From NCBI RefSeq assembly GCF_003918875.1, contig NW_025765015.1:1178001-1242000 (forward strand): 64,000 nucleotides of DNA, in the 5' to 3' direction. Both the position numbers and the translations under genes were made by a program. The first letter of the stretch is position 1, and the number at the start of each line of letters is the position of its first letter. Positions 13,437 to 60,217 of the stretch are shown piece after piece. The notes beneath the pieces are model-generated. The model ran no database searches, was not told where the DNA came from, and saw only the letters and a list, made by a program, of their open reading frames with translations. The stretch is from Haliotis rubra (taxonomy: Eukaryota).

Positions 13437-13508
13437 ATGGCCAACTTACAGCCTATGCTAAGCCGATCTCGTAGACCGTCACATGCAATAGAGGAAAGAG
13501 TCGTACAG
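13437..13508 (+). CDS. AHCYL1: Candidate first coding exon of the IRBIT/AHCYL gene (MANLQPMLSRSRRPSHAIEERVVQ)
   Basis: Strong start context ACAAG-ATG-G, 24 open codons, phase-0 donor CAG|GTAGTA that matches the phase-0 acceptor at 38437. No homology recognised in the peptide itself. Confidence 0.5.
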
Positions 13509-38436: not shown

Positions 38437-38521
38437 GAAATTAAATACAACTTAACGCCGAACAGGCCACGCATCCACAGCCGCTCTGTGTCCCAGTCAT
38501 CAACAGATAGCTACAGCTCAG
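38437..38521 (+). CDS. AHCYL1: Internal coding exon of IRBIT / adenosylhomocysteinase-like (AHCYL1/2 orthologue): Ser-rich IRBIT domain
   Basis: Branch-like TACTAA, acceptor TTTCAATTTCAG|, 85 nt = EIKYNLTPNRPRIHSRSVSQSSTDSYSS + G, donor CAG|GTGAGC (phase 0 in, phase 1 out). SRSVSQSSTDSYSS differs at one position from the recalled vertebrate IRBIT SRSISQSSTDSYSS. Confidence 0.9.
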
Positions 38522-39033
38522 GTGAGCCGCTGGTCTAATACATGAACCATGCCCAGGTGAACAGCTGGTCTAATACATGAACCATGCCCAGGTGAACAGC
38601 TGGTCTAATACATGAACCATGCCCAGGTGAACAGCTGGTCTAATACATGTACCATGCCCAGGTTAGCCGCTTGTCTAATACATGTACCATGCCCAGGTGA
38701 GCTGCTGGTCTAATACATGTACCATGCTGAAGTAGCAGCTGGACTAATACATGTACCATGGTCAGGTGAGCAGCTGGTCTAATACATGTACCATGCTGAA
38801 GTAGCAGCTGGTCTAATACATGTACCATGCTCAGGTAAGCAGCTGGTCTAATACATGTACCATGCTGAAGTAGCAGCTGGTCTAATACATGAACCATGCT
38901 GAAGTAGCAGCTGGTCTAATACATGTACCATGCTCAGGTAAGCAGCTGGTCTAATACATGTACCATGCTGAAGTAGCAGCTGGTCTAATACATCTACCGT
39001 GCTGAAGTAGCAGCTGGTTTAATACATGTACCA
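38519..39033. repeat. Minisatellite, 35/34-bp unit, ~15 copies, starting at the exon donor
   Basis: CAGGTGAACAGCTGGTCTAATACATGAACCATGCC at 38519, 38554... Confidence 0.96.
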
Positions 39034-39167
39034 AGCAACTATCTGCTAACCATGAGAAGTGGCTTGCAGCTGGTCAAGATGTTATGACCAAGCGATGTTT
39101 GGGTGTAGTTGAGGATGAATCTAACAAGGTGATGTTTGGTTATTTGGATCTCACCAGGCGAAATGTG

Positions 39168-40705
39168 CATATAGTTGGGGGCAGGATGTCATCAGGTGAT
39201 GTGTGGGTATAGTTGGGGGCAGGATGTCATCAGGTGATGTGTGGGTATAGTTGGGGACAGGATGTCATCAGGTGATGTGTGGGTATAGTTGGGGACAGGA
39301 TGTCATCAGGTGATGTGTGGGTATAGTTGGGGGCAGGATGTCATCAGGTGATGTGTGGGTATAGTTGGGGACAGGATGTCATCAGGTGATGTGTGGGTAT
39401 AGTTGGGGACAGGATGTCATCAGGTGATGTGTGGGTATAGTTGGGGGCAGGATGTCATCAGGTGATGTGTGGGTATAGTTGGGGACAGGATGTCATCAGG
39501 TGATGTGTGGGTATAGTTGGGGGCAGGATGTCATCAGGTGATGTGTGGGTATAGTTGGGGGCAGGATGTCATCAGGTGATGTGTGGGTATAGTTGGGGGC
39601 AGGATGTCATCAGGTGATGTGTGGGTATAGTTGGGGACAGGATGTCATCAGGTGATGTGTGGGTATAGTTGGGGACAGGATGTCATCAGGTGATGTGTGG
39701 GTATAGATGGGGGCAGGATGTCATCAGGTGATGTGTGGGTATAGTTGGGGACAGGATGCCATCAGGTGATGTGTGGGTATAGATGGGGGCAGGATGTCAT
39801 CAGGTGATGTGTGGGTATAGTTGGGGACAGGATGTCATCAGGTGATGTGTGGGTATAGTTGGGGGCAGGATGTCATCAGGTGATGTGTGGGTATAGTTGG
39901 GGGCAGGATGTCATCAGGTGATGTGTTGGTATAGATGGGGGCAGGATGTCATCAGGTGATGTGTGGGTATAGTTGGGGGCAGGATGTCATCAGGTGATGT
40001 ATGGGTATAGTTGGGGACAGGATGTCATCAGGTGATGTGTGGGTATAGTTGGGGGCAGGATGTCATCAGGTGATGTGTGGGTATAGTTGGGGGCAGGATG
40101 TCATCAGGTGATGTGTGGATATAGTTGGGGGGAGGATGTCATCAGGTGATGTGTGGGTATGGTTGGGGGCAGGATGTCATCAGGTGATGTGTGGGTATAG
40201 ATGGGGGCAGGATGTCATCAGGTGATGTGTGGGTATAGTTGGGGGCAGGATGCCATCAGGTGATGTGTGGATGTAGATGGGGGCAGGATGTCATCAGGTG
40301 ATGTGTGGGTATAGTTGGGGGCAGGATGTCATCAGGTGATGTGTGGGTGTAGATGGGGGCAGGATGTCATCAGGTGATGTGTGGGTATAGTTGGGGGCAG
40401 GATGTCATCAGGTGATGTGTGGGTATAGTTGGGGGCAGGATGTCATCAGGTGATGTGTGGGTATAGTTGGGGACAGGATGTCATCAGGTGATGTATGGGT
40501 ATAGTTGGGGGCAGGATGTCATCAGGTGATGTGTGGGTATAGTTGGGGACAGGATGTCATCAGGTGATGTATGGGTATAGTTGGGGGCAGGATGTCATCA
40601 GGTGATGTGTGGGTATAGTTGGGGGCAGGATGTCATCAGGTGATGTGTGGGTATAGTTGGGGGCAGGATGTCATCAGGTGATGTGTGGGTGTAGTGGGGG
40701 TGCAG
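39168..40705. repeat. G-rich minisatellite, 38-bp unit, ~40 copies
   Basis: GTATAGTTGGGGGCAGGATGTCATCAGGTGATGTGTGG. Confidence 0.98.
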
Positions 40706-41849
40706 GCTCTACAGCTTGTAGATGAAGAAGATAGCATTTTAAAAAAGCATTCATCTTCAAACCGGGAGATCAGTTATTCTTATGCATTAATCTAACTTGA
40801 ACCTGTTGGGACATTTTATGGATGCTTGTACAAGGGAGGTAACTTCAGCAGTTGGAAGATCGCATAATAACAGATTTGAATGATTACCATTTTGTGATAT
40901 TCATTAATACTTCTGACAACATCTGTTACTGTTATGTAGGGCCTAGATACAAATATTCACCAGAAGCTAACTGGTGAAATGTAGACATTGCTGATAAAAG
41001 GAATATGTATGAACCAAGGAATTTGTTGATCAAAGGGATGTAACTCTTGAAGACTTATTGCTTTCCCTGTCAGACTTGCTGGCACATAAGGAAATATCTA
41101 TTTGATTTTGATTTATTACCCAAGAGATATATGCACATAGATTTTAGAAGTGAAAGCCTGTGCTCAGTGTCTTGTGCCATGGACATGCAGTGTACGTAAA
41201 TATGTGAGTATACCCATGCATATTTATATTTTTGGACTTATCTCATTTTGTGTATAAATCATAGACATTTGACCCATTTTATGTTTTCAGTTACTTTGTA
41301 GTTACTGTCATTGTTTCTTTTCTTTATAAGGCATCATTATGAACTTGATTACATTATGACTGCTTGTCAAGAACGCATGACGTATGGCTGGAGATGTCAG
41401 TGGGGTGTTGTATGTGGCGTTGATGTGGGTGAGCCAGTAGTAGTCTTGTTGTTCCAGGAGGGCGGGGCGGCAGAGGGCGAGGAGGGCGTGGGGGGCAACT
41501 CGAGCCCATCACTGACTCTGATTCAGGTTGTATATGTCTGCTCCCTGCTCCGCCTGTATCTGCCTATCACTACCTTACTGTGGTACTTGTAGTTCTGGCT
41601 GTTCTGCTCATGTAGTATCTGTTTTCTTGAGATGAGCCAATTCCCCTATTGTTTGTGTGGTCGAAGCTTACTGTTTGCATGGTATTCACATTGTGCTGAA
41701 CCATGGAACTTCTCAACAGTTAACCCCCATAAAACTAGAGCTGAGTGTCGTGACCCCAGTCTCATAAGACGCTTGTCCAAGACACTAGTCACACAGCTGA
41801 TCACGACCCAAGTCTAATGATAATGCTGAAGTAAGGGACTGGGCCATGG

Positions 41850-43102
41850 CAGGTGGGAGACAATAACCCTGACACGTGAGAGACAGTACCCTGACATGTG
41901 GGAGACAGTATCCTGACATGTGGGAGACAGTACCCTGACATGTGGAAGACAGTACCCTGACATGTGGAAGACAGTACCCTGACAGGTGAGCAACAATACC
42001 CTGACACGTGGGAGACAGTACCCTGACAGGTGGGAGACAATACCCTGACACGTGGGAGACAATACCCTGACATGTGAGCAACAATACCCTGACACGTGGG
42101 AGACAATACCCTGACACGTGAGCAACAATACCCTGACACGTGGGAGACAATACACTGACACGTGGGAGACAGTACCCTGACAGGTGGGAGACAATACCCT
42201 GACACATGAGCAACAATACCCTGACACGTGAGCAACAATACCCTGACACATGAGCAACAATACCCTGACATGTGGGAGACAATACCCTGACACGTGGGAG
42301 ACAGTACCCTGACATGTGGGAGACAATACCCTGACACATGAGCAACAATACCCTGACATATGGTAGACAATACCATGACACGTGAGCAACAACACCCTGA
42401 CACGTGGGAGACAATACCCTGACACACGAGCAACAATACCCTGAAATGTGGGAGACAGTACCCTGACATATGGTAGACAATACCCTGACATGTGGGAGAC
42501 AGTACCCTGACATATGGTAGACAATACCCTCACAGGTGGGAGACAATACCCTGACAGGTGGGAGACAATACCCTGACATGTGAGCAACAGTACCCTGACA
42601 TATGGTAGACAATACCCTGACACGTGAGCAACAATACCCTGACACGTGGGAGACAATACCCTGACACATGAGCAACAATACCCTGACAGGTGGGAGACAG
42701 TACCCTGACACGTGGTAGACAATACCCTGACAGGTGGGAGACAATACCCTGACACATGAGCAACAATACCCTGACAGGTGGGAGACAGTACCCTGACATA
42801 TGGTAGACAATACCCTGACACATGAGCAACAATACCCTGACATGTGGGAGACAGTACCCTGACATATGGTAGACAATACCCTGACATGTGGGAGACAATA
42901 CCCTAACACATGGGAGACAATACCCTGACATGTGGTAGACAATACCCTGACACATGGGAGACAATACCCTGACACATGAGCAACAATACCCTGACATGTG
43001 GTAGACAATACCCTGACACATGAACAACAATACCCTGACACATGAACAACAATACCCTGACATGTGGGAGACAGTACCCTGACACTTGGGAGACGGTACC
43101 CT
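41850..43102. repeat. Minisatellite, 22-bp unit, ~57 copies with interspersed variants
   Basis: GTGGGAGACAATACCCTGACAC with TGAGCAAC / TGGTAGAC variants. Source of the 418- and 357-aa minus-strand ORFs. Confidence 0.98.
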
Positions 43103-46100
43103 TATACCTAATCAGTTGGGGTTTTTTCTGTCTGTGCTCATGTGTTGTTTCTCAAGTTCTTTTTTTTTAATGGACACAAACACTACTTTTTGTACTACTT
43201 TGCACTAAAATCACACAAATGTCTTTTTTTTGCCTTTATAAACAGTGTTAAACTGAAGTTCCTATTAATATCCCACAAATCTATACTACTATAGTCCACT
43301 ATAGTTCATCCATTGCAGCTTTTGTTGATAGTCACTAGCTTTTTTATCATTTATAAGATTGGACTGATACTGCAGACACCAGAAGCTTCGCACCTAACTA
43401 GTAACACTTATATTTACACACCATGTGTTCATTCATTATGTTGTAGTATCCACAAGCCCAAAGTTATCAAATAACTGGAACCTATTATATTTGGATTGGT
43501 CAACCAAAAATGGATATAGGCAGATCACTGATAAACACTAAGTATATGCAATAAAGTCATGAAGAAAAATGCCCTCTATTATGACAAATCTTCCGTGACC
43601 TGTTCAAACCCTGGGTGGTAAAGCTGAACTGATGGGGTCAGGAACAGGCCAGCTCAGGATGACCTGATGTAATGACTTACCAGCTTGGTGTTGGTAGCAC
43701 AGACTTGTTTGTGCATGTTGCATGGGGCTGATTATTACATTTTAGGCGATGTTTGACAAGCTTTTTTGACTTCATTGAATTTTTTGCTTGTTTGGTTTTT
43801 ATTAATTTTTCGTTGTCTCATATTTATAGTAAAAGTTCAAACTTTTTTTCAGTTTTCATTTAGAAAAATAAGATATGGCAAATGCAGTTATTCTTGTCAT
43901 CATTCATATTCTATTGTCAGGTTTAACACAGCCAACAGGGTTCTTGTATACAGATATTGCCTGAATCACTCCGAAACATGGCACAGTAAAGAACGTAACA
44001 GTGTGGTAGATAGGATGAGTAGTAGGTGTACACAGTTTGTTCAAACAGGAGCATGTTTACTTCCAATGTAATAAAACAGGTGTCTAGTGAGCTGGTATCT
44101 ACGTGTTAGACACTGCACTGCTTTATGTTCTGCTGAATGTCATTGAGCTTAAGATATCAGTGTATGTATTGAATAATAAATGATCCGATTAGACTGTATT
44201 AAGAATAGACATGGTTACTAACAGAGTAGGAAAAAGACAGTATAACATTTCAAGACTGATCAGTTCTGTAACACGACTGTGCATACTTTGTTTAAATGTG
44301 CCACTATGTCATATTTTTATGAAAGAATTATTTCAGTGCAGGTTTTCTTTTCTGACCCTGATTTATGTCCGTCCAGTATGTCCAGAGTGAGTGACCATCT
44401 AGTTGTATGTAAATGAGAAAGGACCTTGGATCACCCTGGCCTCCTCCACCCTATCCTGTCTTCCGGACCATTAGTTGGTACATTGATAGGTAATCCTTCG
44501 ACCATAGCTTCAGCAGTTCCATCACAAGAACATAGTGTCCAGCAAGCCCATCTCAGTGGTAATTAGCAGATTACTGGTGAAGTCTGTAGAGGCTAGAGCA
44601 CATTGTGCATGTTTATGTAGGATGCTGAATATATACAGTAACAGTGTAGGAAGTGATGAAGGTCAATAATGCAGTATATATCTGTAATGGCTGTAGATGC
44701 AGTTTGTTTATCTATTTTGCATGGTGAATAACAAATACATTTTTAAGTGCAGCTTGTTATGGATTTTCATAACTATCATCTGAAGTAGCCTGACAGATTT
44801 CAAGTTCCAAAAAGAAGTCACTATTTTGTCGGATGTTTGTAAAATATTTTGAGTATATGTTTCAAATATTGGGTTTTGTGGTCTGTTTTGTTAGTAGACT
44901 TTTACTTTGTGTTAGTTAACAGGAGTATAGACCTTCCTAGACCGAGGGCTGGGCTGCATGAATGTCAAATCTTTTTGATATCACTAGTAACCTCAAAGGT
45001 TGCTCTACACAGAATCGTTTAGTTTGGGTGACTCCAAGTTTAGGCTGAGAGCCTTACAACTACCAGCAATAGTATGGACTGTTGGTAATGTTCATCAGAA
45101 ACAGAGTTGACATGAGCGTATTTTTCTTCAAATTGCCCTATGGCGTCGTCTTTTGTAGTTTACTTACACTCATAATATCATCATTACAGGAGAAAGGTCT
45201 TGAACTACTTCATTAAGTCAGTTCCATTTACATCAAGCACAAGATGTCAAAATGTCTGACAGGATAGGTTTGATGAGAGAGATTTCCAAATTTGTTAATG
45301 AAAGGGTGGTGATTACAAGTGTTGGTCATCATTGATCAGTGGGTCGATCACTGAAAGGTGATTATCAAGATGCATCAAATAGATAATGAAGTATATTCAG
45401 AGATTGCTGTAGAATGTCACTTGTAGTCTAGGCATGGGTTGAGTCAATAGTCTAGATGTGCTGTTAGTTCTTTTGTTCACTAGGTGGGTGATAACGGAAT
45501 ATTTGTGAATGTCGTCATGCACTCTTACCCCCAATGTATTCTAAAACGCTAAGTTCAAGGTCATATGTCTAAATTCTGTCCAAGGAATGTGGAAGTACCC
45601 TGTCATTTATGACATTAATGTGAAAATATTATTTAAGGCAAAATGTGTTGTTCAGTAATTCATGACCATCAGGTTCACAGTCATGTCACTTACCGCTCTG
45701 CCAGTAGAAACAACATACATGAATATATCACACACATATTATATATCATATATAATGTAAACGTAACATTAAAAAAACATTATTATCATACAACAATTTT
45801 TCAACTGAAAGCAATTACTCTGAATTGACATTATAATTTTGTCCAGTCCAATGTCAAATCACTAAATCCTGTGATTGTTTGAAGATGAAGACATTATTTG
45901 ATTGGCTCATCTCATTGTGACATCATCATATTGTGTGTTGCTACATTCTAACACATGGTTCTTTCTCTAACTCTGACCACCTCCCCACCCACTAAGCAAC
46001 TGCCTAACCAGACCCTCCTGGAGACACCCTAATATGGAGATGCCCTAATGTCTGCAAGCAGTAGAGGCTGTTTCACATATTTACACTGAAATATATTCAG

Positions 46101-46168
46101 TTCATTTCAGATAATGTTTGCTGTGATTATGTTTCTGTTGTGATTTGATATAAGCACTGAGTATCTGC

Positions 46169-46217
46169 CAGCCATGTAGCTGGAATACTGCCATATAGCG
46201 TTAAAACAGCAAACAAT
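46169..46217 (+). mobile_element. 5'-truncated SINE/LINE 3' tail with 13-bp TSD
   Basis: GCTGGAATACTGCC...GCGTTAAAAC resembles the SINE tail at ~8260-8290. TSD ACTGAGTATCTGC at 46156-46168 and 46218-46230. Confidence 0.8.
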
Positions 46218-49142
46218 ACTGAGTATCTGCAGTTATATTTGATGTTGTAACCCATTAAAATGAGTGTTTATATAATTCTGCTTTGTTTGTTTTCTGCATA
46301 GATGTTTTGCACATTGATCACAGATCAAGGTGTTTCTTTATGAACACACGGGAAATGTGTTTTAAGTGCATCCAGTGACTCAGAGAAAGTCAACACCAAG
46401 CCAGACCTGGGGAGAGTCATGTGTATTCATACTTTATTCAACATTTGAGATGACGTTTTTTTTCTTATGCTAACATATTTCCAAATATTGATCACTAACA
46501 AAGTACACATGGCAAGTACATGTTTTTGTTACATAGTTTGCCTAAACACTGACAGATGTGGCAACAACTAGGCTAGAGCAAGAGCTGGATGTGAATGAAG
46601 GGTGGAAACTAGTGGCCATGAGAGCTTATATGTTTTATATGTCACAAGCCTATTGTTTTCATCCAGCCTGAGGGATGAGTTCTGTGTTCACAGACTGTGA
46701 CTATTGTGGACCAGGTTTCCTATCAGTATTTAGTCCACAGTCATTGATTGTTCACATTTGCAGTAGGTTGGCTGACTTGTTAACAGTGAATACATGGAGA
46801 TTTAATGGTTGGTCTGGACACATTCATGTGACAACAAGCTGCCAACAGGAACTCAGCTTATTTGTCAACTGTTGTTTGTCGGATCAGTGGGAATTAGTTT
46901 TTATAATAGCTACATTTTATCACCTCAAAATTGTCCCGAAGATACATGACTTACAAAGTGCCGCTCATATACATACAGTCATATTATGTGTTTACTTAGG
47001 ACACAGTGATTGTCAAGGTGAAGTCAGTTTGTTGTGTTTACAGTAACTCTCTCTAACTCAGGCCAATAACAGGGCATGAATTATTGATTAGTTAATCAAA
47101 GTTTTCCTGTAGTTTTTCCTCTAATAGAGAGCAGTCTATGGCTCCTGTGTCGTCAGTGTGAGAAAGATGTCTTTCCGTGACAGCCCTTCAGCTGGGCACA
47201 TCTCCAGCAATCAATGACAGGTCTGGCTGACAACTGTCGTCTGTAGTTATGACAGCCGTCCCACTCTTCCCCAGGGCCAGCACATACAATCGCCCAGCTT
47301 CTCCTCACATGGCAGAAACTGTTTGGGAATTACTAGGGGTTCGCAGCGATCATGCTGTCAGTCTTTCTAAGGCCTGCTGTGGTTGTGAGGTATTCGTTCA
47401 AATACATGCTGTCAACTCATATGTCAGTCTGTAGTCATTTGTATTTTTTGTTGGGTTGTTCTTTTTCCATTTTAAAAATGTTGATTTGGTTACATCACGT
47501 AAAGTTTACCTGCTGAGTTAAAGGTGACCCTGGAAAATGTAAACATGCAGTATGTATTAGTGAGAATGAACGACTCACCTTGATGGCCAGCGCCCCAGGT
47601 AGCAGGGAGGAGACAAGGAGAGGGGGTGACACTGGAACCCCCAGTATCAGCTGATCACTGCCCTGGGCCTCCACTCTTCCTTCTTCCTCCCTCCTTCCCC
47701 TGCCTCCCACACAGCACACTGGTGTAGTGAAGATCCTGGTTGGATGGGCAATCTCAACACTACCTATACTCTGTTTCCCATTTCCAGCTGGAGGAATCCC
47801 TCCCACACTGATTCCTCAGTGCCAAGTAATACCTGCATGCACCATGTCTCCCATCTGTCTACTCACCAACCTGTTCAACCATCTTACCTTTATTGATCAA
47901 ACCTTAAGTGTAGTTCACTCAAGTATAGGGCTTTAATCTTGATTGATTTGGAGAGATGATCCTATTTTCTGCTCTTGGTATGGTGACTGAAGTGTTTATA
48001 CCTTGTTGTTCCCTCAGGGCTAGCAACAAGATCTAGGACCTTGTATGTCAACTGAGGGTGTATCTGTTTGGATATGGTTCTTGGCAAATCCTGTCTTGTA
48101 AGATCAGGTCAATCAGTTTCTGTTTTCTGTGGTAAATCATGGAGACCTAGTTGATTTAATTCTAGTCATCCACATTCCTACAGCCCTTTCTGTCCATACA
48201 ACTTGCAGAAGTATTGTTATGTCCTATTCACAAACCACCAGACACATGTTAAGTAGAATTTTTAGATCACATTCAAGGCCTTTTTGATCTTCTCCTTTTG
48301 TTTTGAATTTAAAGTGAATATTTTGCAAACAGCCTTTCCGTGATAAATGTGGAATATTTGTTTTAGGATGACTCTTGAATGATCTTTATGATCCAGTGCT
48401 AGAAAATATTTTATATTTTCAACTGTCCACAAAAGTCATCACTTACAGAATTGCCTTTTACCTACTGATAAAAGTAGTAGTCCAGAAAGATATGGATGTT
48501 TCCACACTCTAGTGTTCCTCTCTAGGTAATATGGATAATGCATTGTGGTGTGCAAGGTCACGCTGTCCCAGAATGGTGGCATTACAAACAATACCAAGGG
48601 CACATGGGACATATAATGATGTTTCATAGACTTCAACATAATTAGTTTCATGTACCAGTTTTACATATTTTCAAATAGTTTATCATTGTCAAAATATATA
48701 GCTTGTAAATTAGCAAAATGTTCTGTTTCGATAAAGAACTGCTCATTACAACCGGAGAATATAATAACGTACCATTTTTTTCATTTTACAGCTTTAGAGT
48801 AATAATTGATATAAAAGCTGTGTTGTATTATAGACACTTAGCACTATTAGGGATAAAAGATGAGGTTTATGTTAAAACATTTTGTTGTCATGTGGGGTAG
48901 GTGTTGGACATTTTCATACTGCTGTTTGAAATTACATTCTCTGGATAATCTTGCAGTAATGCATTTTCTTTAAATTTTGTTACATGACTTTTTGTCATAC
49001 TGTCACCAGAAACAAGAGTACATACTCTCCTGGCCAGACTATAGAAATGATTTCTCTTAAGTAACCGTGACGACATCAGTGAAAGTCTGGGATTCTGTCT
49101 TGCTGATAAAGCTCAGTCACTAAAATTCCATCCATTCTAATG

Positions 49143-49783: not shown

Positions 49784-49901
49784 TAATGATGACTGTTTTA
49801 TTTTAAGGAAACTGAGGTTTGTTGAACTTTTTTCCATAGAAACATTCATGTATGGATGTAAAGAGTCATGGACATGGTGTATTGCTCATGTACATGTTGT
49901 G

Positions 49902-50055
49902 NNNNNNNNNNNNNNNNNNNNNNNNNNNNNNNNNNNNNNNNNNNNNNNNNNNNNNNNNNNNNNNNNNNNNNNNNNNNNNNNNNNNNNNNNNNNNNNNNNN
50001 NNNNNNNNNNNNNNNNNNNNNNNNNNNNNNNNNNNNNNNNNNNNNNNNNNNNNNN
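49902..50055. other. Assembly gap (154 N)
   Basis: Run of N. Confidence 1.
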
Positions 50056-51859
50056 TAGTTGTCAGCTCATTTTCCCAAGGTGTCAGTATCATTACCAAGA
50101 TTTACTACAACCTTTTGGGCTGTAGTTTATTGTGCAGAAGATAAATGGTACAGATAAGAGGAGTCTCTAATCCTGCAATACTTGCTATCTTCACTGAAGG
50201 AAACGTTTTATCACTCATGGACATAGCAAACTTTAGCTTTACCAAGTCTGATTTACATAAAGAGATACTGGTCCTCTACAGAGGTGATTATCAACATTAG
50301 ACTTCGGTAAAAAGATTGGACCCAAAAGCCATCATCCCATGAGTAACTACATGTATAAGGTTAAAATTAAGTTTGCCTTTGTTAAAGGTACAGCCACTTC
50401 AAAAGGAATCTTTGTTCACTCAACTCAGTGTGTTCAGCTTTGTGCTAAGGTTGTTGGCTTCGTGATATCATCAGCTGGATATATCACGGAATAGTTGATG
50501 GCATGGGATTCCGCTGCCGATTATTATGAGAAGAGTCGCATTATCAGATAAAATTCAAGTGAATTTTTGTCATGATCTGTTGTCTGTTGCCCACCAGTCA
50601 TAATCTTTAACACTGTCAACATCACTGAAACAATAATGCTTCTGTATTGATGGTTTTGGCAATTATGTCTCTGAACATTGCTTTCTGAAGAACTCTTATC
50701 TGATTTTAGACTTGGTTAAATTGTTGGCCATGTTGAAGCCTTTTCCCAGTTACTCAGCCATTTCTGTTTGTCGTGTTGTAAGGTTTGACATGCATTGAGT
50801 ATGTGGTATGTTTCAAAACCTGTTGCACTTTGTTTGGTCACAAGTTGACATAACCTTTATCTTTGACCTTTCATCATTGTGGCTGCTATGTGAAACATTG
50901 GCATTGTGCATATTCCTCCACCCAGCAGTCATTGAATTATCAAGGGGAAATTTTATGTAATTAGGATGCCTGTTAAGTATAAAGGTCAGGGTTTTTTTCA
51001 ACATTTCTGTTTACCCAGTCCATGTAATATGACCTTTCGGATGTAATGTTGCAAATATTCCCCAACGATTTAGGTGATCAATCTGTATAACCTGATGTCA
51101 TGGGAGTGTTTTGTTGTTGACAGTGATGCTTGGTTCCAGCAACACTCAGTGGCCTTCACCTGCAGAATGAAGGCTTCCATGTAATTAATGCTAAACAGAA
51201 ACATGTACAGACAGACAGAGATTATCTTTCATTACTGTGGATCCCATTTGGCTCACCTTTTGAGCAAGTAGGAAAAAATGTAATTTTCATATTTTGGTCT
51301 TCAATTATTGTTACTGGCAGTCAGAATGTGTTTGATTCATGCAGTGGAGCCCATGATGGTGTTTGGGTGTAAGAAGTTGTATGTGCACACTGTGGTAGTC
51401 ATGTAATCTGGTGGCCACACTCCAACTAGGTACAGCTGTACTGCTATGCCCTGTGAGTACCAGACTCATGAATGGCTTGTGTTGTGATTGAACATGATTA
51501 CCTTGAAATTTGAAACAAAATCAGCAATTGATCAACAAATATCAACAGGCAGCAACTTGCCATAAGCCATATGCCATTGTTTTCCCAACCTGTCAGTCTG
51601 CGATTGTTATGGGTCCATGCTTCACTGATCTCATTGTGCGGACATCATACACTATAACACTCTGCCCCATGTTGTGTAGCTGTCAAAAAACCCATGCTAC
51701 ACACCACCATGGCTTAGATTCAAGAATTGTTAAAGTGGATGATATTACTATAAACAGATTTATTGTTCACTATCTTCAAATAGGGTACTAACAAGTGGTA
51801 TCCATGCTGTATTCTGGTACCTGAGGAACCCTCTTGACAGTGGGTAGCCAAACCTGCAG

Positions 51860-52168
51860 CAACCTGCCCCACCCTGCCATGCCCTGTCCCACCCTTCCAG
51901 GCCCTGCCACTCCCTGTCCCACCTTGCCATCACCTGCCACTCCCTGTCCCACCTTGCCATCACCTGCCACACCCTGTTCCACCACACCCTGTCCAACCCT
52001 GTCCTACCCTGCCATGACCTGCCACACCTGTCCCACCCTGCCACACTCTGCAACACCCTGCAACACCCTGCAACACCCTGCCACACAGTCCCAACCAGCC
52101 ACACCCTGTCCTACCCTGCAACACCCTGTCCTACCTTGCCATGCCCTACCCCACCCTGTCCCACCTGC
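51860..52168. repeat. Degenerate C-rich short-period tandem repeat (10-bp-based, with 31-bp higher order)
   Basis: CCACCCTGCC/CACCCTGTCC reiteration. Confidence 0.85.
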
Positions 52169-52585
52169 AAACGGTTACCTTGTTTGGGCTGTGCAGAGTT
52201 ACAGTTGCAACATCAGATGTACAAATAAAGCAGCTGCAAAAACAAGTGATGTGGACAGAACAAACACTGTCCTCCACTCCCATCTATCATTCACCTGACT
52301 TCACAAGGGTTGGTATGAAAGTCTTGTGCAAGCAGCATGCATTGGAATGTGTTTCTGCTCCATTTGTTGTTTGGTTTGTTGTTGTCCACTTTCATCCTCA
52401 AAGCAGGCAATTAGAGAGCGACTGGCCCATGACCTTCAGTGACAGTCGGTCAGACAGACCACATGCATTTTTCAGTGCTTCTAGTGATGCACTTGCCACC
52501 TGATGACACACAGCTTATCAAAACATGAAATATTTGTATAGTGTGTGTGTATGGCATGTGAAACATGTTGTGCATATAACACAAT

Positions 52586-53761
52586 CAGACAAGACCTTGG
52601 TGGTATATCCTGACTCATTAGGTAGTTCACTTTACATATATATACGACACAAGGTTGTCTTACTTCATAAATATAACAGTCAGACAAGACCTTGGTGGTA
52701 TATCCTGACTCATTTAATGGGTAGTTCACTTTACATATATATACAACACAAGGTTGTCTTACTTCATAAATATACGAGATAGACAAGACCTTGGTGGTAC
52801 AGTGAGACCTCGGATACCCGGACCCCAGATATCCGGAAACCTCGCCTTCCGGTCAATTTTTAGTAGAAAAAAACAATCTCTTACGTTATAAAAGTGACTG
52901 TCTATAACGGATATTCGGTTTCCGTTTCCGGACGGTACATTTTACAAACAAACCGGCTAAATCAACATAAAATTGACTCACCTATCCGCACGAAGCTTTG
53001 ATCTACCGCTAACCGTGTGAAGGGAAGTGCGAGAGTCCCACGTGTTTTGACATGAGACATGGTCGGCTAATCCGGATTAATGATCGTCAAGGTATTGGTG
53101 GTGATTAGAAGGCCTAGCTGACACTGAGTTAACCATTGAGTTCTAACTGTTAAGTTGTTTATTCAGTTAAAGCAATAAAAGTGCAGTGTGTCGATATTCA
53201 AGTCAGTTGGTCTTTCAATTGATCACAAATGGCTAGTCAACCTACTAAACGCAAGCTACGCAGTGACAGCCAAGGAAAAGAAAGAGATATGTCTTTACAA
53301 AGAACAAAATCCCAAAGTAAGCTTTGATAACATAAGCAAACATTTTGGACCACGTTGTTTCGGAAGTGATTTCAACCCCGAAGTGTATGCTCGCTACAGA
53401 TTCAACACTAAAGCCTGGAGCGGCACCCAGTGTAAGCAGTCCTCAATGAAAGACTTTTTCAAAACTGAATAATTGTAAAAGTACGATTGTTATGTTGTGA
53501 TGCTGTTTTTTGAATGTCTATACATGTACAATAAACGCTTGATGATCATAAACATTTTGGATTTTCCTTGAGGTGTATGAAAACCAAAAATCCAGATATC
53601 CGGATATTCAATTATCCGGACGATTTACGTAAAAACGAATGTGTCCGGATATCCGAGGTCTTACTGTATATCCTGACTCATTAGGTAGTTCACTTTACAT
53701 ATATATACGACACAAGGTTGTCTTACTTCATAAATATACGAGATAGACAAGACCTTGGTGG
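52586..53761. repeat. ~95-bp tandem repeat (~3.2 copies) interrupted by a pogo-type element
   Basis: AGACAAGACCTTGGTGGTATATCCTGACTCATT at ~52587, ~52682, ~52781 (split) and a partial copy at ~53744. Confidence 0.92.
52800..53666 (+). mobile_element. pogo/Tigger (Tc1-mariner superfamily) internal-deletion derivative
   Basis: TIR CAGTGAGACCTCGGATACCCGGAC / GTCCGGATATCCGAGGTCTTACTG. TA TSD confirmed by empty sites in neighbouring tandem units. Remnant ORF has CENP-B/pogo-like N-terminus (TAKEKKEICLYKEQNPKVSFDNISKHF) and C-terminal KQSSMKDFF. Confidence 0.92.
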
Positions 53762-53769
53762 CATAATCT

Positions 53770-53961
53770 ACACACGTACCTCACTACATATATTGGACAC
53801 ACGTACCTCACTACATATATTGGACACACATGTACCTCACTACATATATTGGACACACACATACCTCACTACATATATTGGACACACACGTACCTCACTA
53901 CATATATTGGACACACACGTACCTCACTACATCTATTGGACACACATGTACCTCACTACAT
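53770..53961. repeat. Minisatellite, 27-29-bp unit, ~7 copies
   Basis: CACGTACCTCACTACATATATTGGACA. Confidence 0.95.
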
Positions 53962-54249
53962 GTATGAAAGAATCCTGAAATATTTATGATCAACTGCAGT
54001 GATGGAGTAGGTTGCTAATTAATTTTCAACATGATCCTGCCCTAGATCCACAATTTTCTGCCAATAGTACTGAAGTGCATGGATCCCACTGATGAAAAAG
54101 GCTTCCTCTGGATGGTGTAAAAAGTCCATCAAAGCAGAAGAGATAGTGTCACTATTTGCATCAAAGTGATTTCCATTCCCCGAGAGATGAACCTGGAAGG
54201 TTTCTGATCATGAGTTACAATCCTTGGAGCCCTGTGTGCTGTCCTGCTC

Positions 54250-55430
54250 AGTTGATTCCTTAAACTGTTCTCCCTCATGAGAGATAGCTGTATCGGGTAT
54301 GTGATGTAGTGATCAGTCCTCCAGCATATGTAGCATATCAGGCATTCTGTCAACATTTTATTTAGTGGTGGCAGTTGAAGGTTTTCTTGATCTTCAATCA
54401 TCTTCAAGGCTCTCTTCCCCTTAGAGCTCCACTATCCAACCTATAACAGTTGCAGCGGAAGGAGCATCACCCTGTAAAGTTGGCATGTCCTCATGGCTGG
54501 CTGTTGGAGTTGGCACTTTCTATTGGAGATACTTGATGTCCACTGGCAGTAACAGAGATTACACAAACACTTAGGATCACATATGCTGTCACTTTAGTTG
54601 TCTTCCTTTTCTGATGAAGTAAACAATAGATCTTGTGCTTTTTACGAAAAACAATGTATCAACAGTTAAGTACTCATATGAATGGCTAAATGGCTATATC
54701 ATTTTGATTATGTCGTTATGATTGTCTTCAGCATGTTGTATCCCCAACAGAGCAAGTACAACCATATCTCTCTCAGGATCCCAGTGTGTCATGTACAGAT
54801 AGCCAGCATGCTAGCATGATTTAGTACAGTCACAGACAGTATAGTAATGGTGCTTCTACAATACAAAATTGGCATTGGAATAGTATTGAATAGATAAATG
54901 GACTTTGCCTATTTGGATGATGTGACAATCTGAAACCTTGACCAGCATATCAATGGTGAGCTCCAGTACCTTTGCTAAGTATTGTGAAATAGTTTGAATG
55001 CTTCATGTTCTGAATGTATTTCCTGACCCTTGAGAAACTATTTCAGATATTCATAGAATGTATTTCCTCAAAAGAGTATGCTGTAAATGAGTACAGTATG
55101 CATATACCATGGCTAATGAGTAATGTACATATTGGAGCTGTAGCAGTGCATGTCCCACCGAAACTTGGAGTGAAGACAATGTTCCTTCATCTGCCAGTCT
55201 GCTAGGAAAAAGGAGCAGTAGAAATCCAGTGATCATAGTCCTCATTGACAAGTTACCTTTCAGGATTGTAATTCTGATCCAGTTCTCAATGCATTGTTTT
55301 GCTACAATTTGCAATCTGAAATCAATATGGGTGTGGTCAATGGGAATTCCCATATATTGTTTGAAGAATTGTGCTAAAGTTGAAGACAAAGTAGAGTCTG
55401 GAAATTCCTGTTCATGCCAGTTTTAAATGT
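54250..55430 (-). mobile_element. Highly decayed non-LTR (LINE) reverse-transcriptase relic
   Basis: Colinear weak motifs on - strand: IDHTH..RL....IENWI (ORF 55051-55389), AKVLELTID.......HI (~54920-54975), KRALKMI (~54400-54420), LQLPPL (ORF 54129-54407). Confidence 0.35.
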
Positions 55431-55453
55431 TGTCCGACTTGATATGAAACATG

Positions 55454-56130
55454 AGAGATGTTGTATCTTTGACCTGTATCTACCACATAAAGAGATGTAT
55501 CTTTGACCTGTATCTACCACATAAAGAGATGTATCTTTGACCTATATCTACCACATAAAGAGATGTTGTATCTTTGACCTGTATCTACCACATAAAGAGA
55601 TGTTGTATCTTTGACCTGTATCTACCACATAAAGAGATGTATCTTTGACCTGTATCTACCACATACATAAAGAGATGTATTTTTGACCTGTATCTGCCAC
55701 ATACATAAAGAGATGTTGTATCTTTGACCTGTATCTACCACATAAAGAGATGTTGTATCTTTGACCTGTATCTACCACATAAAGAGATGTTGTATCTTTG
55801 ACCTATATCTACCACATAAAGAGATGTTGTATCTTTGACCTGTATCTACCACATAAAAAAGAGATGTTGTATCTTTGACCTGTATCTACCACATAAAGAG
55901 ATGTTGTATCTTTGACCTGTATCTACCACATAAAGAGATGTTGTATCTTTGACCTGTATCTGCCACATAAAGAGATGTTGTATCTTTGACCTATATCTAC
56001 CACATAAAGAGATGTTGTATCTTTGACCTGTATCTACCACATAAAGAGATGTATCTTTGACCTGTATCTGCCACATAAAGAGATGTTGTATCTTTGACCT
56101 GTATCTGCCACATAAAGAGATGTTGTATCT
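55454..56130. repeat. Minisatellite, 37-bp unit (34-bp variant), ~18 copies
   Basis: GAGATGTTGTATCTTTGACCTGTATCTACCACATAAA. Confidence 0.98.
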
Positions 56131-56744
56131 CTCAAATCGTTTGTCACGCACAATTGTCAGAGTTTTGTTTAAAACTGAAAGATGCTAGCATGCATGAGCA
56201 TGCAAAACACCAAAAGTAGCATGTCAACAAATCTGTACTGAACTATGCAAGTAAATCTTGTCGTTACACTTTCTGTAAAATAGTGTACATTGTATGTCAT
56301 AACTTTAATAATTTTATTCAGAATGAACTGATCTTCATATATCTCCAACTCACTTTTATTTACATTTTACCATGATGAGATTTCAGTTAATTACCTGCTG
56401 AAATGAGCATTAGTATTCAGAGCATGGATACATATATCACAAATAACATATTTTCATTTTTTGTTTGACATCTATTTGTGTTACATTGTTATCTAGATTG
56501 AAAAAGGAAGTCGAAAGGAAGCTCCAAAAGGAAGCCTTGTCAAACTTTCCATATGTAAACAATGGACAGCAGATGTGCCGAACAGCTACACTTTTGGCTA
56601 TTAGTATTATAAATATTTTATTGTGAAAGCTACAACTGCAATAACCCTATTAGAATATATAATTGCTAGTAAAAATTATTGTTGCTTATACAGTATATTC
56701 AATCCCAGCTTCATAATTCTTTTCATATATATCACTCAGAAATC

Positions 56745-57307
56745 TTAATCCTACACTTACAGAATAGCGGATACCTAATTATATACATTCTATTGTGCGT
56801 GTGAGGCTCCTTTATATAGAAGAAACAGAGAGCGTGAGCCTGCGAGCGATCCAATAAAAATACGAATTTAAGGTAAAAAATAAGGTTAAAATCGAATTCC
56901 TCACCTTACTTCCGGTTTAGGAAACCTAAAGTTGGGATTTTAACAGCATTCACTGACGTAAACTGAGTAAAAAGTAATCGTGTGTTCAAATTTTATTCAA
57001 ATGCATGCTGGGAAAGGAACTCTACAGTGTGGGAACACTCTGATGGTAAGTGTTTTTTGATTGGTAAGGTAAGGTAGGTAAGGCTTTTAAATAAAGGGGG
57101 GTACCCCCTTTACCCCCATTATATTACCTTTTTTAGCTTTAATATTGTTTAATATTTAATATTTAATATTGAACGGTGCTTCAACACAGCCTTCATTCAT
57201 GGCGTGCCGTTGCTAAGGAAACAAAACGGAAGTTCGCAAAAATAAATGCGTAATCAAAATAGAAATGGCGGATAGGTATCCGGTATTCTGTAATCTTGCC
57301 ATCTTAA
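56745..57307. mobile_element. Non-autonomous element with 21-bp subterminal inverted repeats
   Basis: TTACAGAATAGCGGATACCTA (56757-56777) versus TAGGTATCCGGTATTCTGTAA (57273-57293), one mismatch. TTAA lies ~10 bp outside each. CpG-richer interior with an AAGGGGGGTACCCCCTT hairpin. Confidence 0.65.
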
Positions 57308-57699
57308 TCTCTGTATATAAAACAATGCCAGGCAGAACAGGAAGTACAGTTAAATTGTAAATCAACATGTCCAGTGATGTTTTTTCACAAAATTCATTCC
57401 ATTGAACAATTTTGTCAACTTCTGTTTTGTAATGTTCCTGATTGTACACAGTACACAAAATGACCCTCAAAAGCAAAACCCCGAAAACTGTGTCCATGAA
57501 AGTTCTGCATATTGGGCTCGTTTTCAAATATCTGAATACTCTGGTGAACAGAGATATTAATGGCTCTCATTTTTGTTATGGCTTCATTCATCTCTGACAC
57601 AAGTAGTGTTTGAAGATCTTTGCTTTGGGATCAGTAGGATTTGCAAGTGACTGTGGTTTGTGTGAAAATCAAACCCTGGTCGCTGCAATAGTTGTGTGT

Positions 57700-58545
57700 A
57701 CAGGGGTACAAGAAGACAGTGTGTGTCTGGGCTCTTCATGACACAGGGGAACAGCACGACGGTGTGTGTCTGGGCTCTCCATGACACAGGGGTACTGGAA
57801 GACGGTGTGTGTCTGGGCTCTCCATGACACAGGGGTACTGGAAGACGGTGTGTGTCTGGGCTCTCCATGACACAGGGGTACAGGAAGACGGTGTGTGTCT
57901 GGGCTCTCCATGACACAGGGGTACAGCAAGACGGTGTGTGTCCCGGCTCTCCATGACACAGGGGTACAGGAAGACAGTGTGTGTCTGGGCTCTTCATGAC
58001 AGGGGTACAGGAAGATGGTGTGTGTCTGGGCTCTCCATGACACAGGGGTACAGGAAGTTGGTGTGTGTCTGGGCTCTCCATGACACAGGGGTACAGGAAG
58101 TTGGTGTGTGTCTGGGCTCTTCATGACAGGGGTACAGGAAGTCGGTGTGTGTCTGGGCTCTCCATGACACAGGGGTACTGGAAGACGGTGTGTGTCTGGG
58201 CTCTTCATGACACAGGGGTACAGGAAGTCGGTGTGTGTCTGGGCTCTCCATGACACAGGGGTACAGGAAGTTGGTGTGTGTCTGGGCTCTCCATGACACA
58301 GGGGTACAGGAAGTTGGTGTGTGTCTGGGCTCTTCATGACAGGGGTACAGGAAGTCGGTGTGTGTCTGGGCTCTCCATGACACAGGGGTACAGGAAGTCG
58401 GTGTGTGTCTGGGCTCTCCATGACACAGGGGTACAGGAAGTTGGTGTGTGTCTGGGCTCTCCATGGCACAGGTACAGGAAGTCAGCATGTGTCTGGGCTC
58501 TCCATGACACAGGTACAGGAAGTCAGCATGTGTCTGGGCAGGGGT
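57700..58545. repeat. Minisatellite, ~43-bp unit (41-44), ~20 copies
   Basis: CATGACACAGGGGTACAGGAAGACGGTGTGTGTCTGGGCTCTC. Confidence 0.98.
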
Positions 58546-58860
58546 ATAAGAAGACTGCAACAATGGAGGCAGGTAATCTCACTCACGCCTGCTGCAAGTG
58601 AGCTTTCTCATCACAGCATCTCAGTTACATTAGTTGCAGAGATTGAAATAGGCTATAGCTGGTGGTGATGACAGTGTAGATTCTTCAGTGCCTATCAAAC
58701 AAGGTTTGTGGGTAGTGCACTTTTCAACATGCTCCTTAGGCTTTGATCAGGTGCGGAATCATAATTATTACATCGGAAATGTTTGCACACTGAAATATTG
58801 ATTTTACCTTATTTCTGACTTTTTGAGAAGTTTATTTTTCTGCCTGTCTATTTTTGTTAG

Positions 58861-58902
58861 GGGATGGTTTATTAATGGAAACGGCTTTGACTTCAACCCC
58901 GA
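58861..58902 (+). CDS. Candidate 42-nt frame-preserving cassette exon of the IRBIT gene ((G)DGLLMETALTSTP)
   Basis: Long pyrimidine tract TTTATTTTTCTGCCTGTCTATTTTTGTTAG|, donor CGA|GTAAGC, length divisible by 3, open in phase 1. Confidence 0.4.
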
Positions 58903-59717
58903 GTAAGCCTCAAGTTATTGATTAAATGCAAATACTGATGAAATTGGTGTAGACTGATAAACTAATAAATTCCCAGTTTGGTGTACTGGGCAATCACCGG
59001 TGTTGCTGATTGGCTGTCAGATAGGTACCCACAGCTCAGTGTTTGCTTGCCTTAATCACGTGTATTATATGATGAAAGGCTGGCAAATCCTTACAGGTTA
59101 AAAAAGGCGAGACTAATCTCACAATTCTATTGTGATCAAACATAACCGTCTCTGCTAATTTGAGAGCTTGGTTATTTTCCCCCTGTGTGTGAATGGACTG
59201 TTCCATGGCTGTGTGAGATCCACCATAGACGGATGGGAGAGATCCTGCTTTGTGGAGTGCAGGTTGTTATCTAGTGCTATAGGAAGTCAGTCAGGGAGTT
59301 GAAGCAAGCTTACAACCACAACACAGGTCCTGGCCAACCCTACGTCAGCTGGCATCTGAAAGGCAGTGTGTGTTCAGTGAGTGGGAGAAGACTGGCTGTG
59401 CTAGCCAAGGTGCCCTCTGATTCCTCCATGCAGTAGCCTCCCTCTCTCTGCTGCTGCGGCTGCTGAAGGGATCAACTCAATTGATTGGAGATTTGTTATT
59501 GTCTGACACTGTGTGAGGTGTGAGAGGAAGGGGACGAGTGTCATGGTAAGACAAGTGTCGTAGTCCTAGTCACCCCTCCGCCCATATAGAGGACGTACCC
59601 ACAAGCTTGTGTTTACCTGTCTGGGTGCCACTGTCACAGGAGTACCAAGGCAGACGCCTGCACCAGCTGTATATTGCATCTCAGCTGTACAGTTCAACCT
59701 TGTAAATACACACAGTT

Positions 59718-59961
59718 ATGTCGGAGATTCTAGCAAAGAAGTTCCTAAGCTTCAAGACTAACTCCAGTGAGAACTTTGACAAGTTTCATGAAGGTGAGAA
59801 GATGCAGAACATGGTGGATGAAGAGGGTGAGGACGCATACCGTGCTCGTGCTGGACGTAAACGTCACAGTGTCCAGCTGGACAAGCGTCTCACCCAGCAG
59901 CTGATGGCCATTCAGGACAGGAGGTCCAGCACCACCAGCACCGGCACACTCGATTCTCTCT
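59718..59961 (+). CDS. AHCYL1: Candidate alternative first coding exon of the IRBIT/AHCYL gene (81 codons + 1 nt)
   Basis: Non-repetitive ATG-initiated ORF with protein-like composition (MSEILAKKFLSFK...RRSSTTSTGTLDSL). Ends at a consensus donor T|GTAAGT in phase 1, the same phase as the 38521 donor. Preceded by a GC-richer UTR-like tract. Assignment to this gene is inferred. Confidence 0.65.
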
Positions 59962-60217
59962 GTAAGTCACCTAGCTAGGGCCACGGTCACAGTATATGCT
60001 GTCATGCTTCACCTCATATGTTTCTATAGGCTGATCATTTAGCATCACAGATGCATGTACTTGTTTAATGTATTATTGATATTTCATTAAATGATCATCA
60101 AGTATGAATGATTCCCAGTAGATGACTACAAACACTGAGGATTTAATTTGCTTTTGCGTTTGTTTATGATTGATCTTCCAGATGTTGTAAATGTGGTAAA
60201 TGATCATTTGTGTACTC

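Follow-up and report, generated by a model that had tools for sequence, protein, structure and literature searches.

Two alternative N-termini in a mollusc AHCYL (IRBIT) gene: a conserved second start exon spliced to the shared acceptor exon

IRBIT-family N-termini and the layout of the Haliotis locus

IP3 receptors, as well as transporters of bicarbonate, chloride and protons, are regulated by the hub protein IRBIT, whose activity is governed by a code of multiple phosphorylation sites. The vertebrate isoforms described so far all hold this code constant and differ only in an appendage upstream of it. Hierarchical CK1 ladders of the form pS/pT-x-x-S/T are known from other proteins, e.g., beta-catenin (S45 > T41 > S37 > S33). 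In vertebrate IRBIT (AHCYL1), priming at S68 is followed by CK1 phosphorylation of S71/S74/S77, CK2 sites are found at S80/T82/S84/S85, and S62/S64/S66 are also PKA targets; in 2026, S80/S84/S85 (CK2) was proposed as the likely direct IP3-pocket site, and CK2 phosphorylation by itself is enough for IP3R binding in vitro (PMC13319452). Multimers of IRBIT family proteins form via the AHCY domain, and some targets, such as AE2, are independent of the phosphosites (PMC7966362). Two papers (PMC7966362, PMC10111226) cite Kawaai et al. 2017 for the Long-IRBIT (AHCYL2) splice variants V1-V4, in which the phosphorylation sites are conserved and the appendage upstream of them is the sole difference; N-terminal variation of mammalian Long-IRBIT alters stability and target spectrum.

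The window, i.e., the whole stretch of DNA analysed, comprises 64,000 nt of the plus strand of Haliotis rubra (NW_025765015.1:1,178,001-1,242,000; GCF_003918875.1). It contains two exons on this strand, exon A and exon B, which lie 21 kb apart and both end in phase 1 (Table 1). Exon A is preceded by ...atttcag, is followed by the donor gtgagc and leaves a lone last base, g; read from phase 0, its translation is EIKYNLTPNRPRIHSRSVSQSSTDSYSS, of which RSVSQSSTDSYSS is the canonical ladder part. As the first-pass annotation had stated, the equivalents of all four human ladder serines (S68, S71, S74, S77) are in this translation, and the ladder is the same as in vertebrate IRBIT almost letter for letter. 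The peptide matches the Dreissena gene model P0019 and insect AHCYL fragments (tblastn), and the pattern R-S-x-S-x-x-S-x-D-S-x-S-S is invariant in an alignment of canonical N-termini from a bivalve, this window and insects (alignment A2). The canonical first coding exon was sought by comparing the Dreissena N-terminus with the window and 40 kb upstream (tblastn), which gave weak matches only, the best plus-strand, ATG-led candidate being 13437-13508 (E 1.4). A word search for a gastropod canonical N-terminus with residues 30-83 of P0019 gave Dreissena sequences only.

Table 1. Coordinates of the features in the window
Feature	Position	Strand	Remarks
Exon A, internal coding exon of the AHCYL/IRBIT gene	38437..38521	+	starts in phase 0, ends in phase 1
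Assembly gap (N run)	49902..50055	.	inside the 50.4-kb canonical intron, 5' of transcribed exon B
Exon B leader (5' UTR, minimum extent)	59070..59717	+	contigs of four runs colinear with the genome
Exon B coding part, alternative AHCYL N-terminus	59718..59961	+	ATG-led, 81 codons + 1 base, phase 1
K7-K8-F9-L10-S11-F12	59736..59753	+	alignment A1; gastropod-type sequences only
R47-K48-R49-H50-S51-V52, predicted basophilic (PKA/PKG-type) site	59856..59873	+	alignment A1
R68-R69-S70-S71-T72-T73-S74-T75-G76-T77-L78-D79-S80-L81	59919..59960	+	RRxS, then S/T at +3, +6, +9
Exon B donor GTAAGT	59962..59967	+	all four contigs leave the genome exactly after 59961

On homology and phase, exon A would join the same acceptor exon as exon B, and in this canonical transcript exon B lies inside an intron of 50.4 kb. 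The N run in the window is intronic and lies 9 kb 5' of 59070, the first transcribed base seen for exon B; therefore, no exon or reading frame crosses it, and it has no effect on the finding of two N-termini. It may hide a small exon.

Splicing of exon B to the AHCY-like body

Contigs that include exon B were obtained from four runs of four studies and three organisms: X1 and X17 (organism A), X5 (organism B) and X9 (organism C). The runs are presumed to be RNA, this label being a guess, and the contigs give no transcription start, abundance or tissue. They begin at 59070 (X5), 59247 (X17), 59309 (X1) and 59393 (X9), and all are colinear with the genome up to 59961, with no joint upstream of the exon B ATG. 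Past 59961, the contig ends in all four runs match the start of the exon at L013:4937 over 29-30 nt, apart from 1-2 synonymous differences. This 30-mer occurs once in the 1.38-Gb genome, at C125:1266937, and exon B donates across an intron of 28,975 nt to this acceptor (tttttcag/CATCC). The exon (C125:1266937-1266995, L013:4937-4995) thus lies outside the window, at the window-equivalent position 88937, 29 kb past exon B. It was predicted in the first-pass annotation, and splicing from 59961 to it was seen in every run. Across the splice, t/ca encodes Ser, followed by SYTGSSSDEEDISPREKPQ, and the protein junction is ...TLDSL-S-SYTG; exon A is bypassed entirely, so that the exon B transcript does skip the canonical ladder, as had been suggested. 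Exon B is carried by transcripts whose 5' end lies at 59070 or further upstream; their translation begins at 59718, and 59961 is joined to the shared exon. The alternative N-terminus of AHCYL is confirmed.

The shared exon reads (A/S)SYTGSSSDEEDISPREKPQ and includes an acidic serine cluster, SYTGSSSDEED, followed by PREK; both the S-Y-T-x-S-S-(S)-D-E cluster and PREK are shared with vertebrate IRBIT (numbering of PMC13319452). Exons with Pfam AdoHcyase (PF05221) matches follow downstream on the same strand (C125:1272642-1300209), and tblastn recovered some 15 AHCY-like body exons ending in ...KAGPFKPNYYR. The catalytic-like exons expected beyond the window are thus present and the body is complete. 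In the exon B protein, an N-terminus of 81 aa replaces the canonical S68/S71/S74/S77-type N-terminus, whereas the acidic serine cluster and the whole AHCY-like body are kept.

Lying inside a 50-kb intron at a distance of 21 kb from exon A, and with a start codon of its own, exon B might be taken for a separate gene nested in AHCYL, or for a processed copy. However, four contigs and three independent mollusc gene models join it directly to the AHCYL exon, the acceptor exon (judged by its 30-mer) is unique, exon B is single copy, and the two exons joined as DNA are absent from the genome, so that the join does not come from a DNA copy. We rejected this explanation as extremely improbable. AHCYL itself appears to be a single gene; only two AdoHcyase loci were found in the genome. 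Spliced contigs, phases and homologous gene models together support the earlier proposal that two alternative N-termini of one gene lead into the same phase-1 acceptor.

Conservation of exon B and of its serine/threonine run

Judging by comparisons between species, exon B is under purifying selection. Within its 244-nt ORF, six of the six coding substitutions in the sister species (organism B) are synonymous and in third codon positions; the 648-nt leader differs by 25 substitutions and 3 indels. Peptide identity among gastropods and bivalves is 55-75%, and the exon is conserved in both classes. The same N-terminus is joined to the shared AHCYL exon in gene models of Batillaria (P0005), Babylonia (P0012) and Ruditapes (P0015), and none of the spliced models loses the reading frame at the splice. 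It should be noted that the exon B transcript could be regulatory, or noise, without productive translation, and a leader of at least 650 nt with six upstream ATGs that open short ORFs would fit this; an in-frame TAA (59703-59705) stands 15 nt before the exon B ATG. The silent changes in the ORF against a leader that gathers substitutions and indels, the conserved peptide and the preserved frame make this very unlikely.

In Batillaria, the intron from exon B to the shared exon is also ~29 kb. An exon A homologue was absent from the 10 kb upstream of exon B at the Batillaria locus (L026), a result that is uninformative because the distance between the two exons is 21 kb in the window.

The claim is limited in that the isoform already occurs, without comment, among automatically generated gene models: "putative adenosylhomocysteinase 3" of Babylonia areolata (P0012) and of Ruditapes philippinarum (P0015), BaRGS_00012580 of Batillaria attramentaria (P0005) and "adenosylhomocysteinase" of Plakobranchus ocellatus (P0006) have N-termini like that of exon B. 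The exon B N-terminus is 59-74% identical to deposited mollusc models, which are unreviewed, partial and automatic. A literature search found no description of an exon B-type N-terminus or of its sites. A profile search of a whole library (HMMER) gave 15 clusters only, all short, mollusc-like fragments to which no taxon could be assigned, and no vertebrate- or arthropod-like matches; absence from this library is only moderately informative, because full-length isoforms are collapsed there at 50% identity. A Pfam scan of the exon A and exon B peptides matched no domain, and an ESM Atlas feature search with the 81-aa exon B peptide returned no usable match.

The peptide ends in ...DRRSSTTSTGTLDSL, followed by the lone base t, and the RKRHS and RRSS sites named in the first-pass annotation are both in the translation. 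The best conserved block is AYRARAGRKRHSVQLDK (alignment A1), not the ladder: R47, R49, S51 and V52 are invariant in 14/14 sequences and present in all further cluster representatives. R68, R69, S71 and S74 are likewise invariant (14/14), and R-R-x-S-x-x-S recurs in all further cluster members and in the divergent P0022/P0141 type, which comes from an ENA assembly. Nearly all gastropod-type sequences keep D/E-S, an acidic residue before Ser, at the end of the exon. In an AlphaFold2 model of the 81 residues, which is of low confidence (mean pLDDT 60) and was used solely to call the ladder segment disordered-looking, residues 72-81 have pLDDT < 50 and are predicted to be disordered, and the RKRHSV block sits between two low-confidence helices.

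It had also been claimed that exon B carries the same ladder as exon A, with S/T at every third residue, and this holds in part. The invariant RRxS-x-x-S stands, as does the register of consecutive i+3 steps in all gastropod-type sequences (five steps; at +12 stands the first Ser encoded by the shared exon) and in the divergent P0022 type (four). In bivalve-type sequences there are 2-3 steps and the run is broken in all cases by insertions of 1-2 residues. When the 12 residues that follow the RRxS serine are shuffled with their S/T content fixed, S/T at +3, +6, +9 and +12 is expected in 14% of cases for this sequence and in 7% for the gastropod consensus; if any register is allowed, an i+3 run is expected in 21-42% of shuffles. 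The spacing by itself is not significant (p 0.07-0.14). Residues of the segment that cannot be phosphorylated (V/G/D/L) are conserved to the same degree as the ladder serines, and the ladder register is therefore not set apart by conservation. The transcription, splicing and conservation of exon B are above chance.

No homology to the canonical N-terminus is detectable in exon B, in which one step is T and R stands at both -3 and -2; exon B also lacks the conserved D73-type context, except for D before the last Ser, and has a second invariant site, RKRHSV, 20 residues upstream. The likeness is in format, that is, R-x-x-S followed by S/T at every third residue, as CK1 uses after a priming phosphate (PMC13319452). 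We make no claim that exon B arose from exon A by duplication; the profile-profile probability for A1 versus A2 is 2.3%, over 15 columns of the serine run.

Predicted phosphorylation codes and choice of N-terminus

On balance, we lean towards a single mollusc AHCYL gene with two starts of transcription and translation, in which the exon B N-terminus is itself a putative phospho-regulatory module; as far as can be read from the residues, a second phospho-switch in its S/T segment is plausible. PKA/PKG/CaMK-type kinases would phosphorylate the two invariant basophilic sites (RKRHS-V and RRxS), and once the RRxS serine carries its phosphate, a CK1-type kinase would be primed to modify the S/T at +3. 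In gastropods, this would go on to +6, +9 and +12, reaching in register the serine with which the shared CK2 cluster begins, and promoter choice would set how the constant target-binding cluster is licensed. As in CK1 phospho-ladders, a priming site is followed by S/T at three-residue spacing in a segment predicted to be disordered; for exon B the likeness is one of sequence format, and ladder length differs between mollusc classes.

Alternatively, exon B may be real but its S/T run a serine-rich linker, the isoform being in effect a ladder-less IRBIT, either S68A-type or constitutively driven by CK2. Its function would then reside in the RKRHSV block and its helix-prone flanks (through localisation, stability or a different partner), or the isoform would act by forming mixed multimers with the canonical one via the AHCY-like domain. 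We regard this as possible, though not probable. The prominence of AYRARAGRKRHSVQLDK, the chance-compatible spacing with a register broken in bivalves and the lack of homology to the canonical ladder all suit it, as do the sufficiency of CK2 for IP3R binding in vitro, given S80/S84/S85 in the shared exon (PMC13319452), and AHCY-domain multimerisation with an AE2 interaction that needs no phosphosites (PMC7966362). Conversely, a mere linker would not be expected to keep RRxS-x-x-S in every sequence found, five steps in register with the shared serine in all gastropod-type sequences, and D/E-S at the exon end in nearly all.

Two qualifications apply to the phospho-regulatory reading that we prefer. 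Because the S80/S84/S85 site is in the shared exon (PMC13319452), exchange of the N-terminus would affect the priming/peripheral part and not the whole switch; and because both priming sites have R at -3 and PKA also hits S62/S64/S66 (PMC13319452), the swap of kinase input is less clean than was earlier claimed. A bolder version, which we offer only tentatively and consider rather doubtful, is that the gene has two unrelated, mutually exclusive phospho-code cassettes, chosen by promoter and both in register into the shared CK2/IP3-mimicking cluster. One mollusc AHCYL would then do the job of two vertebrate paralogues. Depending on the cell, IRBIT would be licensed to bind the IP3 receptor and transporters either by a PKA/PKG-type signal (RKRHSV, RRxS) or by a CaMK/PKD-type one (canonical S68). 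If true, the two-cassette gene would be a natural domain swap in support of the two-site model (peripheral ladder plus core S80/S84/S85).

A distinction from Long-IRBIT is that, although alternative 5' ends of an IRBIT-family gene lead to different N-termini in both cases, exon B replaces the S68-S77 segment itself, within an apparently single AHCYL gene. In a conserved, expressed isoform, the code is exchanged from S68 to S77 but retained from S80 to S85, and the boundary of the swap is the cut proposed in 2026 between the priming/peripheral ladder and the core IP3-pocket site. If the exon B segment is phosphorylated, molluscs provide a natural experiment on the interchangeability of the code and on the kinase inputs able to license IRBIT; if it is not, they express a natural ladder-less IRBIT, which is also informative. 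Near the start of the exon B peptide, K7-F12 resembles an RVxF-type PP1 docking motif ([KR]-x-[VIL]-x-F) and is a putative site of this kind; bivalve-type sequences read KKLLAK in its place (alignment A1).

One AHCYL gene with two N-termini and one shared acceptor

A single AHCYL gene carries two N-termini that use one shared phase-1 acceptor. Exon A, the canonical IRBIT ladder exon, and exon B, an alternative ATG-initiated first exon, lie in the window, which covers G000:C125:1178001-1242000 on the + strand (see the table), and the claim of the first-pass annotation that both end in phase 1 was borne out by their translation and donors. The exon-B ATG is preceded by an in-frame TAA 15 nt upstream. 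The acceptor exon that had been predicted beyond the window was found when 70 kb past its downstream end were fetched and searched; it starts as tttttcag/CA TCC TAC ACA GGC. Joined to it, exon A reads ...DSYSS-A-SYTGSSSDEEDISPREKPQ and exon B reads ...TLDSL-S-SYTGSSSDEEDISPREKPQ, across introns of 50,415 nt and 28,975 nt, respectively. Pfam AdoHcyase exon matches are located at C125:1272642-1300209, on the same contig and the same strand as the window, and about 15 further exons were mapped by tblastn (full AHCYL open reading frame), the last of them ending ...KAGPFKPNYYR at C125:1300209; therefore, a complete AHCY-like body lies downstream of both N-termini. The exon-B isoform thus read lacks the whole canonical S68-S77 ladder and keeps the acidic serine cluster and the AHCY-like body. 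The junction of exon A (38521) with the shared exon is predicted from homology (Dreissena, insects, vertebrates) and from phase; canonical N-termini of the bivalve Dreissena (protein P0019) and of insects are found on the same shared exon.

Features of the AHCYL locus (positions without a prefix are window coordinates; C125 is the contig and L013 the fetched downstream stretch)
Feature	Position	Strand	Description
Candidate canonical first coding exon	13437-13508		MANLQPMLSRSRRPSHAIEERVVQ, then GTAGTA; ends in phase 0; preceded by a GC-rich leader-like stretch
Exon A	38437-38521	+	pyrimidine-rich acceptor ...atttcag; encodes EIKYNLTPNRPRIHSRSVSQSSTDSYSS plus one base; donor gtgagc
35-bp minisatellite	38516-39033		15 copies
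38-bp array	39170-40500+		at least 35 copies
Assembly gap (N run)	49902-50055		between exons A and B, within the intron of the canonical transcript
43-bp array	57700-58539		G-rich, 19.8 copies, GC skew about +0.3
Exon B, coding part	59718-59961	+	81 codons ending ...GRKRHSVQLDKRLTQQLMAIQDRRSSTTSTGTLDSL plus one base; donor gtaagt
25-bp array	60217-62339		C-rich, 84 copies, GC skew about -0.7
Shared exon	L013:4937-4995 = C125:1266937-1266995 = window-equivalent 88937-88995	+	59 nt, ends in phase 0

Vertebrate L-IRBIT variants differ in the appendage, while the phosphorylation sites are common to them (PMC7966362; PMC10111226). In contrast, the ladder segment itself is exchanged in this gene, and a single AHCYL locus was found in the genome (1.38 Gb in 2,855 contigs searched). 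The sole other AdoHcyase locus found, at G000:C2159:908387-917728, is compact, at about 9 kb, and probably encodes the true AHCY enzyme.

It should be mentioned that the first base seen in exon-B transcripts lies 9 kb downstream of the N run. The N run is crossed by no reading frame, so that its continuity is irrelevant to the finding, and it may hide a small additional exon. The analysis did not find the first coding exon of the canonical transcript; the weak candidate in the table shows a weak resemblance (E 1.4) to the Dreissena N-terminus (MSEADALLSQNQRPS...). The 35-bp minisatellite starts in the final 6 nt of exon A, and the donor of this exon, CAG/GTGAGC, is accordingly the first of about 15 donor-like CAG/GT copies, and the 38-bp array follows. 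These arrays are a possible source of cryptic donors, or of length polymorphism, next to a conserved exon.

Transcription and splicing of exon B

The exon-B stretch is contained in 18 public runs, and the Logan contigs of four of them (three organisms, four studies; the run records label these four as RNA as a guess only) were placed on positions 58600-60190 of the window. In each of the four runs, one contig is colinear with the genome from 59070, 59247, 59309 or 59393 to exactly 59961, beyond which its letters depart from the intron sequence. The consensus of these loose ends, CATC(C/G)TACACAGGCAGCTCATC(T/G)GATGA(G/A)G, matches the opening 29-30 nt of the shared exon but for 1-2 differences, all synonymous; the 30-mer of the shared exon occurs once in the genome, at C125:1266937. 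A whole-genome search showed that the joined exon B-shared exon sequence is absent from the genome, and exon B is single copy; therefore, the contigs represent spliced RNA. No joint upstream of the exon-B ATG was seen in the contigs of the four runs, thus exon B has the behaviour of a first exon; its leader measures 648 nt or more, the Logan contigs fixing neither the true start nor the expression level. The leader contains six short upstream ORFs.

Comparison of organism B, the sister species, with the window revealed six substitutions in 59718-59961, all of them synonymous changes in third positions; the 648-nt leader has accumulated 25 substitutions and three indels. Position 59888 is T in the assembly and C in the contigs of each of the four runs, the two with the same organism label among them (CGT > CGC, synonymous); the T represents an allele or else an error of the assembly. 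Two arrays flank exon B: the G-rich 43-bp array lies some 0.5 kb before the first base seen in transcripts, and the C-rich 25-bp array starts 256 nt past the donor.

Conservation of the exon-B N-terminus

The exon-B isoform is real and conserved, and its nearest named relatives are gastropods. A word search with the 81-aa peptide yielded 11 short proteins (E 1e-43 to 5e-10; Batillaria, Plakobranchus, Nucella and other contigs), most of which are genomic read-throughs into the same phase-1 intron that end in ...SLCK or ...SLCE. Using the shared part as query, we recovered three gene models that join an exon-B N-terminus to AHCYL (Batillaria P0005, Babylonia P0012 and the bivalve Ruditapes P0015), and also P0022, a cDNA-like contig of a divergent type. 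In Batillaria attramentaria (JACVVK020000069.1, locus L026), the exon-B homologue is at 10001-10240 and the shared exon at about 39568-39642, so that the intron has a similar length in two distant gastropods (29.3 kb in Batillaria versus 29.0 kb here). A profile search of 1.84 billion representatives produced 15 clusters only, all short and all like the mollusc sequences already found. The exon-B N-terminus is already present in unreviewed automatic gene models, and full-text literature searches found no description of it.

In a cDNA-like contig (ENA ERZ3792507 NODE_445, 2391 nt), a pair of AHCYL 5' ends stands in tandem. The exon-B-like N-terminus reads MPWRED...HRRASTVSTESW-S-SYTG; the second N-terminus reads ...APSLSSGSHTS-SYTG and is followed by the whole AHCY-like body. 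This contig looks like an assembly join of two isoforms, so alternative N-termini on the shared acceptor may be more widespread.

The serine/threonine run and a possible phospho-switch

In the alignment of 14 exon-B-type N-termini, the invariant residues are E27, K28, E35, E38, R44, R47, R49, S51, V52, L54, R68, R69, S71 and S74. Together they form the block AYRARAGRKRHSVQLDK, which harbours the basophilic site R-K-R-x-S-V, and a further R-R-x-S site with S at +3. In gastropod-type sequences (this window, P0001-P0008, P0012 and P0134), S or T is found at +3, +6, +9 and +12 from S71; the +12 residue is the shared exon's first serine and corresponds to human S80. Four +3 steps are present in the P0022 type. 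All bivalve-type sequences have one or two extra residues, and the +3 run ends after two or three steps. Composition alone would place S/T at each of the four positions in 14% of shuffles of this sequence and in 7% for the gastropod consensus. Both the broken register in bivalves and these chance statistics keep alive the main alternative, that the run serves only as a linker and the isoform would be an IRBIT naturally devoid of the ladder, its special function residing in the RKRHSV block or in mixed multimerisation with the canonical isoform. In the segment of the run, non-phosphorylatable residues are conserved as well. A profile-profile comparison of exon-B-type with canonical N-termini detected no homology beyond a 15-column alignment of the serine run (probability 2.3%).

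In canonical IRBIT, S68 primes CK1 phosphorylation of S71, S74 and S77, S62/S64/S66 are PKA sites, and S80/T82/S84/S85 are CK2 sites; pS80/pS84/pS85 are proposed to occupy the IP3 pocket, with pS71/pS74/pS77 as peripheral contacts, and the cascade in cells still requires S68 phosphorylation (PMC13319452). Here, the CK2 cluster is encoded by the shared exon, and the swappable exons hold the priming and peripheral part. With RRxS, the exon-B N-terminus would bring a priming site of its own, and in gastropods at least it would add a CK1-format run that leads in register into the shared cluster; a second basophilic site is located 20 residues upstream of RRxS. A phospho-switch function of the exon-B isoform is plausible. 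The swap of kinase input suggested in the first-pass annotation is possible but would not be clean, because R occupies -3 in both priming sites and PKA phosphorylates canonical IRBIT as well.

Gastropod exon-B N-termini start with M-L-A-K-[KR]-L-L-[STA]-F, the window having KKFLSF at 59736-59753 (residues 7-12). The gastropod start fits [KR]-x-[VIL]-x-F, the RVxF-type PP1 docking pattern, as a putative docking site; in canonical IRBIT, a PP1 site precedes the ladder. The RVxF-like F is missing from the bivalve types. The AlphaFold2 model of the exon-B peptide (mean pLDDT 60, low confidence) shows residues 19-45 and 56-68 as helix-prone and the tail, residues 72-81, as disordered.
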